From Bugula neritina (Eukaryota > Animalia > Bryozoa): a DNA stretch of 64,000 nt. Position numbers and translations under genes: made by a program. How positions within the stretch are numbered: the stretch's first letter is position 1; each line of letters opens with the position of its first letter. Below, piece after piece: positions 28,116 to 48,548 of the stretch. The stretch is taken from assembly GCA_964035545.1 (NCBI GenBank), contig OZ037768.1:21063700-21127699 (forward strand). The letters are read 5' to 3'. The notes under the pieces are model-generated. The model had not been told where the DNA came from and did no database searches. It worked only from the letters and a program-made list of their open reading frames with translations.

Positions 28116-31100
28116 ATGGCTGGGAGAAGAGTCAGCAGACCAGATGAAGGTGCCAAACACTATAGCAATTTATTTCAATAGAACCTGTAGAAATAAAGTT
28201 TTGAGCATGGTTTTAACTTATTTATAAAACTTTGAGATTAGAAAAAGTAATTTATTCTATATTAAAGCAATTTTATTGACCCAATTGTTAGAATTATATA
28301 TCTTTAAATTACTCTGCGTTTATTGACTACTTATAATAAACTATATGATAGATAATATTTGTTAGATGACAGTTCATCAGTATACACAGTTTATATACAG
28401 AGCAACATTGTAGACTTGTATCTAGAAATATTAGTTGTTAGATTTTGCTTTCAGCTTTATTGTTCATTGCTAGAGTTTGTAGCATTTCATCCTTTATATT
28501 TTGTAGGTTTGTACAGACTCTGGTTTGGTCATGATCACAGGAGTTTCCTTATGGAGGAATTGAGGATTATAATCAAAACAGCTAATACCCTTAAAAGATA
28601 CACCATTGAAAAGGTAAAGCAGATTCCTGAAGCCAGAACTGCAACACACCTCATCCTATTTGAACGAATTCCACCAGACATCCACCTTCTCTTTCCACTA
28701 GTCACTCATCTCACTATCAAAAGGTCTCAACTATTTTCCATACAAAAGTAAGACTTTAATCAGAAAATAACAAAATCCTAAAGTATTTTACTAATTGGTA
28801 GATGGCAACAAGGAAAAAATGAAAAAGCTTATAGCTGTTTTCTAAACTTAGATCCTGGCTTTTTCACATATATATATATATATATATATATATATATATA
28901 TATATATATATATATATATATATATATATATATATATATATATATATATATATATATATATATTTATATATATATATATATATATATATATATATATATA
29001 TATGTATATATATATATATATATATATATACATATATATATATATATATATATATACATATATATATATACATACGAGGGTGGTTCAAAAAGTAACGCCT
29101 GTTGTGTAAGATCAGAGAATTTTTATTTTCTGAATACTTAAACTATATATCAAAATGATCAGCAACAACTTAGGAACACACTTTATTTCTCAATATAGTC
29201 TCCTCCATTGTCCACAGCTGCTGTCCATCGTTTTATGAGACCATGTATTCCTGCCTCGTAAAAGGAGGATGGTTGTGAGCGCAGCCAAGACCGTACAGCC
29301 GTTTTAACTTCTTCATCAGTAGAGAATCGCTGACCTCTAAGTCCTTCCTTCATCGGACCAAACAAATGGAAGTCTGATGGAGCCAAGTCAGGGCTGTATG
29401 GTGATATGAGGCAATGTGGTCCACCCATGACGGGTGATTTCCTCTCTTGTTCTCAAACTTGTGTGGGGACGGGCATTGTCGTGCTGAAGGAGCACGTTAG
29501 CCACGTTGACATTTGGTCTGCAACGCTTAAGTCTGGTTTTCAACTTCTTTAGAGTCTCAATGTAGGCTTCAGAATTTATGGTAGTGCCTTTGGCCATAAA
29601 GTCAATCAGTATCACACCCTGATAATCCCAAAACACAGTAGCCATCACCTTGCCAGCGGATGGCTGAGATTTGAATTTCTTCTTTCTGGGTGAGTCTGCA
29701 TATCGCCATTCCATTGATCTTCTTTTGCTTTCTGGCTCATAATGATGAACTCAAGTTTCGTCACCAGTGATAATCCTTTGCAAAAATGTCTCATCTTCTG
29801 CATGCATGCTGAGAAGCTCACAACCATCCTCCTTTTACGAGGCAGGAATACATGCTCTCATAAAACGATGGACAGCAGCTGTGGACAATGGAGGAGACTA
29901 TATTGAGAAATAAAGTGTGTTCCTAAGTTGTTGCTGATCATTTTGATATATAGTTTAAGTATTCAGAAAATAAAAATTCTCTGATCTTACACAATAGGCG
30001 TTACTTTTTGAACCACCCTCGTATATATACATATATATATATATATATATATATATATATATATATATATATATATATATATATATATATATATATATAT
30101 ATATATATATATATATATATATATATATGTATAATCCGAGTAACTTAAATACATTGCACCTGACTTGACTCTGTATTTTGCTAAGCAATTTGTTAACTTT
30201 GTAGCCCTGTGTCTACTCTGCCTACTTTATGTTCATTATACATATAGTATGATAATAACAATTCTGCTTTTCACATCCGCTCCTTTGAGATGTAAACCCT
30301 CGCACTCACCATTTTATATGATGTTCAAATCTCAGATTATTAAGGGTAGGTAATTGTTTCCAAATGGACTAAACTTGTTCTAGTATATATTTATTGTTAC
30401 AGCATAAGCAAGTTGACTAATCTGAAGGCATTAGATATGAGTAGCAATGACTTTTCTGCTGGTCTACCTGACATCGTCAGTTCTCTACTCTCTCTGGAGG
30501 AGTTGGAGTTGAGATTGTGTAAACTACAAACTCTCCCCAAAAGGTAAAACACGCTTCATATCTCCTGTGTTATGCGCTAATATGCTATACTTGTAGTAAT
30601 CCTGGCTTAGCTTTGATATCTCATTTTCATATTCCATAAAAGTGGGTATCTGTTAGATAATATATAATTCTATGGGCTATCTAAATCAACATCATAACCT
30701 ATTGGGTCATTTCGTGTCAACTCAACCAATGGCCCACGCCTTTGCGTCTCAGATTTTGTTCATATTTACACCAAATGAACCTACACATGTCTTGAGTGCT
30801 ATTCTTAAATATTTCTGGCCTGACACAAAAACTTTTTGAGAAATGAATATTTCCACGAACAAAGGTTGGGAAAAATTTTGAGGAAAATTTGCGATTTTTA
30901 CTTTTAGACCAATTTGTAAACGTCCATATTTCCATTATTTTTCTAGACTGAGACTTAAAATTTGGTGTGTGATTTGATAACACCTATCAATTTGCACTAG
31001 TAGTAACACATACTGCAGAATACTTTGTGTGCATATATGCTAAGCCATTGAATATTGGCAATTCTTCATAAATTTTGAAAAATTTCGAATATTTGCCACA

Positions 31101-48548: not shown

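Follow-up and report, generated by a model that had tools for sequence, protein, structure and literature searches.

In bacteria, proteins with the domain order LRR+AP-GTPase+COR+CASPASE (e.g., OQX07365.1) have been listed by Kaur et al. (2021, PMC8195603). The LRR-AP-GTPase-COR-effector proteins, of which several paralogues occur per genome, were interpreted in that work as counter-invader systems. In amphioxus, the text of Zhang et al. (2008, PMC2575513) proposes 'LRRs-caspase' shortcut genes as a direct link between recognition and apoptosis and does not name Roc-COR or a GTPase; a further amphioxus caspase paper (PMC3196919) makes no mention of LRRs or a GTPase. The LRR exons of brown algal ROCO genes are shuffled, and these genes respond to many stresses (PMC11378527). 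The best-studied Roco protein, that of Chlorobium tepidum (CtRoco), is an open, active monomer when bound to GTP and shows a large GTP hinge movement (PMC11052575).

The window described here (the whole 64-kb stretch of DNA that was analysed) contains a bryozoan gene in which an LRR arm, a Roc-COR switch, and a caspase are joined, and its product is referred to as Roco-caspase. It is a Roco protein and neither an NLR nor a classical initiator caspase. The initial annotation named no characterised animal Roco with a caspase, but novelty of the design could not be upheld: a categorically new architecture is ruled out by PMC8195603, PMC2575513, and the Branchiostoma models in the databases. In the literature searched, which covered few subscription papers, no description of a bryozoan Roco-caspase family and no experimental test of how LRR-Roc-COR-caspase proteins work were found; neither the bryozoan family nor its cassette LRR exons or mechanism appear to have been described.

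With the bacterial counter-invader proteins, Roco-caspase shares the LRR-AP-GTPase-COR-effector order, the variable N-terminal LRRs, and the caspase, which is one of several C-terminal effectors in bacteria. It is not, however, a prokaryotic gene with a bacterial caspase-like domain but an animal gene that is spliced, codes for a caspase of metazoan type, and has cassette LRR exons, whereas the bacterial counterparts are predictions only. A bacterial contaminant or a recent transfer is ruled out by the 15 spliceosomal introns, the intronic transposons, and the metazoan caspase.

Gene structure, transcripts, and bryozoan relatives

The spliced model consists of 16 exons on the plus strand (28116-48548), which yield 4,290 nt and 1,429 aa with the sole stop at the end; all 15 introns have GT-AG borders. 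We are nearly certain that this gene structure is correct. Pfam and homology searches were run exon by exon, and the joined 1,429-aa model was used for alignments and trees. The least certain part is exon 1 (28116-28149, aa 1-11), a putative start placed from its frame and a GT donor only, the donor (GTGCCA) being weak. Exon 2 (28507-28747, phase 1-2) encodes an N-terminal cap preceding the LRRs; it aligns with the N-terminus of a Bugula relative (P0261), and a similar W-Y/F-R-H motif is present in Watersipora models. Exons 3 to 8 are LRR cassettes. Exon 9 (42335-44406; 2,072 nt) encodes the last three LRRs, Roc, COR-A, COR-B, and a C-terminal CxxC...C motif. As LRR, Roc, and COR are found in this one exon, linking them requires no splicing. 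The 700-aa ORF (42318-44420) contains a GT donor that begins at 44407, where exon 9 closes in phase 1. Bridging exons 10 (45064-45147, phase 1-1) and 11 (45465-45655, phase 1-0) keep the frame into five caspase exons.

Contigs of four public runs from four studies were aligned to 42600-48580 (exons 9-16). The runs are presumed to be RNA, and the spliced joints and empty introns speak for this. Splice joints were found at 7/7 introns from 44406 onward, i.e., from exon 9 to exon 16. The key joint 44406>45064 is present in runs X1, X3, and X4 (three studies), and the joint 47841>48411 in X1, X3, and X8. Two joints were placed with a small shift (45144>45463 and 45657>46131), which is due to a substitution next to the junction in the transcripts and alters neither length nor frame. 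Depth is concentrated over the exons and coverage is zero in introns 9-11 and 15, while introns 12-14 contain low-depth intronic contigs, chiefly from X1. No read-through from the exon 9 donor to the stop at 44420 is seen, as the depth of 15.6 in the bin 44400-44599 equals the share of its seven exonic bases. All contigs are short unitigs. Most of them share 90-99% identity with the window, so that they may derive from alleles, from a sister population, or from paralogues that are very close.

The same layout recurs in relatives. A homology search of 50% representatives returned 107 proteins at E<1e-30, of which the best 60 or so are bryozoan-type Roc-COR exons or genes, the named ones coming from Watersipora subatra and Bugula neritina. 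A caspase is present in nine Watersipora models longer than 850 aa and in a 1,341-aa Bugula model, and apparently also in the model neighbouring the latter. Watersipora P0029 and Bugula P0261 have the seven introns between the end of COR and the stop at the same aligned places and in the same phases as the gene in the window; in the linker, which is variable, the places agree to within a few residues. A metagenome contig (L001) contains a 75% identical relative with the same exon order into the caspase. Roco-caspases of the same layout form a family in two bryozoans. No second gene of this family was found elsewhere in the 64-kb window.

It is very improbable that the fusion arose in modelling or occurs only as a minor isoform, with a Roco message that stops at 44420 and a caspase that is transcribed separately. 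The message is spanned by no single contig and the contigs differ from the window, as such a reading would allow, but the joint 44406>45064 was recovered in three studies with zero coverage beyond the donor, and fused full-length models with conserved intron positions exist in Watersipora, Bugula, and amphioxus. The many short 'caspase-like' models of Watersipora, which belong to the same clade as the fused caspases, would also fit a separate caspase transcript; several of them, however, start within the acidic linker, resemble cut-off pieces, and may be split gene models. About 20 such RefSeq models (P0194-P0214) are related to the fused caspases, and all eight that were placed on the tree (8/8) fall into the fused-caspase clade. 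Separate Roco and caspase genes were rejected on the strength of the spliced joints in three studies together with the conserved introns.

For this part of the gene the initial annotation has held. It had claimed a phase-1 donor at 44407 within the 700-aa ORF and two bridging exons leading stop-free into five caspase exons (about 1429 aa), as is found in the model. It had further proposed a single LRR-Roc-COR-caspase chain, to be checked by RNA across 44406>45064>45465>46129 and to be given up if transcripts ended at 44420 and the caspase had an mRNA initiated separately. The joints were found, no sign of such transcripts appears in the depth past the exon 9 donor, and the introns kept in relatives likewise support one chain.

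LRR arm and Roc-COR switch

About 15 LRRs are present in total; in the exon-by-exon scan, Pfam LRR matches were obtained for exon 3 and the beginning of exon 9. All six cassettes are of phase 2-2 and 85-98% alike. They comprise exon 3 (30403-30543; 141 nt, two LRRs, Pfam LRR_1), exon 4 (37661-37801; 97.8% identity to exon 3), exon 5 (39415-39555), exon 6 (40202-40336; 135 nt), exon 7 (40682-40822), and exon 8 (41125-41265). Exons 3 and 4 are part of a recent tandem duplication, the first copy of which is interrupted by a 3.7-kb foldback element. Variation among the cassettes is centred on the concave face, where 8 of 10 columns vary compared with 8 of 36 elsewhere (Fisher p=0.0015). The pN/pS ratio, calculated from few synonymous sites and non-independent pairs, is 1.9 on the concave face and 0.36 elsewhere. 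Roco-caspase shares with the LRR-shuffling ROCO genes a tandem array of LRR exons that are all in one phase and differ in their exposed residues. As in the brown algal genes (PMC11378527), the tandem cassettes are located 5' of Roc-COR; each 141-nt exon encodes two LRRs here versus one LRR per exon in the algae, and the caspase present here has zero mentions in the algal paper.

The switch is a Ras-like Roc domain (Pfam Roc, 29.1 bits against a cut-off of 27) with intact G1-G4 motifs. Its P-loop spans G476-T483 (42645-42668, with K482 at 42663), followed by DMGG at 530 and THKD at 599. COR lies directly after Roc. The Pfam matches of exon 9 to COR-A and COR-B are weak and below the cut-off, but the structural matches of its model include LRRK1, CtRoco, and 3dpt, an isolated COR domain. 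Predicted with a pLDDT of 88.7, the exon 9 structure has LRRK1 (E 7e-23) and the C. tepidum Roco (E 1e-19) as best Foldseek matches, and the Roc-COR GTPase fold of Roco-caspase is intact as modelled. A NACHT or NB-ARC ATPase was not found by Pfam scans of each exon or by structure match, and the NTPase is a Roc GTPase. The conserved CxxC...C motif at the end of COR may bind zinc.

The LRR-Roc-COR fold is common to LRRK1/LRRK2, MFHAS1-like Roco proteins, the C. tepidum Roco, and Roco-caspase, although the identity of the latter to solved Roco structures is only about 15%. The C-terminus differs: a caspase is found here, whereas the others carry a kinase, a death domain, or nothing. RefSeq labels the Watersipora relatives 'MFHAS1 homolog'; in a tree without vertebrate MFHAS1, bryozoan Roc-COR forms its own long-branched clade. 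Among 56 bryozoan-type Roc exons, the motifs are mostly intact (G1 in 53/56, G3 in 52/56, and G4 in 51/56). Bugula P0261 (KAF6038145.1, L002:3001-15734), named CASP8 in UniRef and adjoined by a second LRR-caspase model, combines a decayed P-loop and G3 with an intact caspase dyad and is thus a pseudo-GTPase Roco-caspase. As the P-loop is decayed in some family members, GTPase activity is not required in every one of them.

Caspase effector and counterparts in amphioxus

The linker between COR and the caspase is encoded by exon 10, which is helical in the homolog model, and exon 11, which gives an acidic, flexible stretch with a D-L-S-D/E motif at aa 1108-1118. The caspase follows in exons 12 (46129-46299; start of the large subunit with the S1 residue Arg1181), 13 (46663-46885; His1239 at 46744-46746 and Cys1283 at 46876-46878), 14 (47213-47398; inter-subunit linker and start of the small subunit), 15 (47732-47841; small subunit with Arg1353 of S1 and Ser1359), and 16 (48411-48548; end of the small subunit and TGA stop). 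Pfam Peptidase_C14 matches exons 12 (E 5e-10), 13 (E 5e-11), and 15, and the best PDB matches of exon 13 are caspase-8, followed by caspase-2 and caspase-1. The alignment shows that the His1239-Cys1283 dyad, the S1 residues Arg1181 and Arg1353, and Ser1359 are kept. The two arginines are the equivalents of Arg179 and Arg341 and form the basic S1 pocket. The large and small subunit fold around the dyad was seen on the model of a Watersipora homolog. This model consists of LRR-Roc-COR, a helix, a disordered acidic linker (low pLDDT), and a full caspase with a TM score of about 0.8 to caspase-8 and caspase-3.

The catalytic pentapeptide deviates from QACxG. It reads EVCSG here, QACSG or QACGG in Watersipora, and QACRG in amphioxus, so that Glu replaces Gln in this copy, unlike in eight full-length Watersipora and 13 amphioxus relatives; the initial annotation had passed over this deviation. 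In known caspases the Gln of the pentapeptide lines the S1 pocket. EVCSG lacks this residue, and the specificity or rate of the caspase may therefore differ. At the usual inter-subunit site, the Asp of Roco-caspase is followed by Pro, and Asp-Pro sites are cut poorly by caspases. Most bryozoan members contain an S-D-[L/V/I]-S-D motif about 45 residues N-terminal of the caspase, which could be a self-cleavage site that releases the protease.

These deviations raise the question of whether the caspase of this copy, though part of a single chain, is weak, altered in specificity, or non-catalytic and acts as a scaffold, a decoy, a dominant-negative (cFLIP-like) partner, or a bait for microbial caspase inhibitors. 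We consider this unlikely. EVCSG in place of the QACSG/QACRG of relatives and the poor inter-subunit site would agree with it, and in some bacterial conflict systems many predicted caspase effectors are inactive (PMC7159879), but His1239, Cys1283, Arg1181, Arg1353, and Ser1359 are all retained, the RNA contigs spell V-C-S-G at the end of exon 13, and the caspase domain is full length.

In Branchiostoma, the LRR-Roc-COR-caspase architecture is the same as in the bryozoans. It is found in P0102 (XP_002614028.1) and at least 10 further models from B. floridae, B. belcheri, B. lanceolatum, and hybrids. The five caspase introns have the same phases in both groups. Three of them align exactly and the other two to within a few columns; a phase-1 intron after COR is likewise present in both. 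The groups differ in the pentapeptide (QACRG in amphioxus versus Q/E-A/V-CSG in bryozoans) and in the COR-caspase linker (about 20 aa versus 90 aa). The amphioxus LRR-Roc-COR scaffold carries a caspase, Death, OTU, or GT4 domain, and the carriers of these effectors are intermixed in the Roc-COR tree, suggesting that effectors have been swapped in amphioxus. The models P0087, P0104, P0113, and P0172, for example, end in an OTU protease, a GT4 glycosyltransferase, Death, or caspase+Death+GT4. Another architecture is seen in the ENA entry P0193 (916 aa), a predicted protein that combines an LRRC8-type pannexin-like channel domain, LRRs, and a QACRG caspase.

Bryozoan and amphioxus caspases each form a clade with full support and are weakly sisters (82/74) among poor outgroups. 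A single bryozoan and amphioxus Roc-COR clade is weakly rejected (AU p=0.027) under a simple model with a long bryozoan branch. Named outgroups of the trees did not include caspase-2, -8, -3/7, or vertebrate MFHAS1, and 15 caspase sequences that were redundant or partial were excluded. The introns shared by the two groups may simply be old introns and fit a single fusion as well as separate fusions.

Proposed mechanism and genomic setting

Initiator caspases are activated by proximity. NLR inflammasomes and the Apaf-1 apoptosome follow, by analogy, the same logic as Roco-caspase, i.e., a repeat sensor, an NTPase switch, and a caspase output. In Roco-caspase, however, the switch is a GTPase instead of a STAND ATPase, CARD, DED, and PYD are missing, and the protease is part of the same chain. 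No Pfam match to a CARD, DED, or DD prodomain was obtained on the scanned exons or the full-length relatives, and no 19-mer of the 1,429-aa protein exceeds 1.3 on the Kyte-Doolittle scale, which fits the absence of a transmembrane segment. The initial annotation had described a receptor with LRRs as its sensor-like part, without CARD/DED adaptor domains and without a transmembrane segment; the variable concave face (p=0.0015), the Pfam result, and the hydropathy scan agree with this description.

The one spliced gene most likely encodes a soluble, adaptor-free cytosolic receptor-protease, with the LRRs as sensor, Roc-COR as switch, and tethered caspases that would cut once paired; the mechanism as a whole seems to us somewhat probable. 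The caspase would be held off at rest by the LRR arm and a nucleotide-free or GDP-bound Roc-COR. A ligand or a change at the LRR face would lead to GTP loading and a hinge shift at the LRR-Roc joint, which would release or cluster the tethered caspases and allow their pairing and activation in the manner of initiator caspases, without a CARD/DED adaptor. GTP hydrolysis would reset the switch unless the caspase cuts itself loose at the acidic linker. The output would likely be cell death or inflammatory signalling in innate immunity. Activity could reside either in a COR dimer or in monomers opened by GTP, the caspases of which would pair unaided. As CtRoco is active as a GTP monomer, coupling could be a release of autoinhibition instead of simple COR dimerisation, and by this analogy the dimerisation step of the initial annotation, though plausible, may be too simple. 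If Roco-caspase resembles the bacterial Roco, the dimer would be the rest state and GTP-driven opening would lift the autoinhibition.

The same mechanism could also have a non-microbial trigger: the LRRs might recognise self or non-self proteins, as in allorecognition between colonies, or respond to damaged cells or to a signal of development, for instance when polypides die in their regular cycle. Bryozoans are colonial and show allo-incompatibility (PMC8195603), allorecognition fits variable LRR faces equally well, and the brown algal ROCOs react to stresses of many kinds (PMC11378527). The presence of transcripts in four unrelated studies, however, speaks against such a trigger, and a large family that is spread over many loci and whose effectors are swapped in amphioxus agrees better with pathogen conflict than with a single allorecognition locus, so that a non-microbial trigger has a low probability in our view. 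Only tentatively do we suggest that bryozoans possess a large, diversifying Roco-caspase repertoire as their main cytosolic immune or allorecognition receptors, replacing NLR-adaptor-caspase complexes.

If this suggestion holds, Roco-caspases would represent an animal receptor class in which a GTPase directly gates a protease, arising in parallel, or retained from an early ancestor, in amphioxus and bacteria. Roco-caspase would also show how LRR sensing can reach a caspase without an adaptor, in a phylum of animals with hardly any work on immunity, and it ties the immunity of invertebrates to the counter-invader designs of bacteria. The coupling of the nucleotide cycle of Roc-COR to the effector is still debated, even for LRRK2, and a natural Roco protein with a caspase offers a simple on/off readout (cleavage, death) for signalling as GTP monomer or dimer.

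The 64-kb window consists of AT-rich, transposon-rich animal DNA. Intron 2 contains a mariner-like element within TA runs (29000-30096), the minus strand of which encodes part of a transposase (PF01359) at 29388-29714. The foldback-type DNA element in intron 3 (30704-34424) has 1.3-kb inverted arms that are 98% alike, ends in GGG...CCC, and lies within a 4-bp target duplication (TATT); the corresponding empty site can be seen near 37958 in the duplicated copy. A second inverted-repeat element in the same intron (35333-36990) has a core of about 10% GC. Upstream of the gene, no Pfam match was obtained for two ORFs scanned in 24721-27392. The broken frames of this region (minus strand, one plus) are presumably pieces of a Penelope-type retroelement. 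A GC-rich Ty3/Gypsy-type LTR retrotransposon with LTRs 98% alike occupies 53900-61850. It has separate ORFs for protease-RT-RNase H (55265-58108) and integrase (58202-59935) and an extra 523-aa ORF (59659-61230) with no Pfam match. A 3-kb segment occurs twice (5697-8772 and 12598-15622), 6.9 kb apart and with 93-98% identity. Two minisatellites are present, at 62262-62668 (11-nt units) and 19764-20456 (33-nt units), the latter of which produces a 216-aa ORF at 19819.
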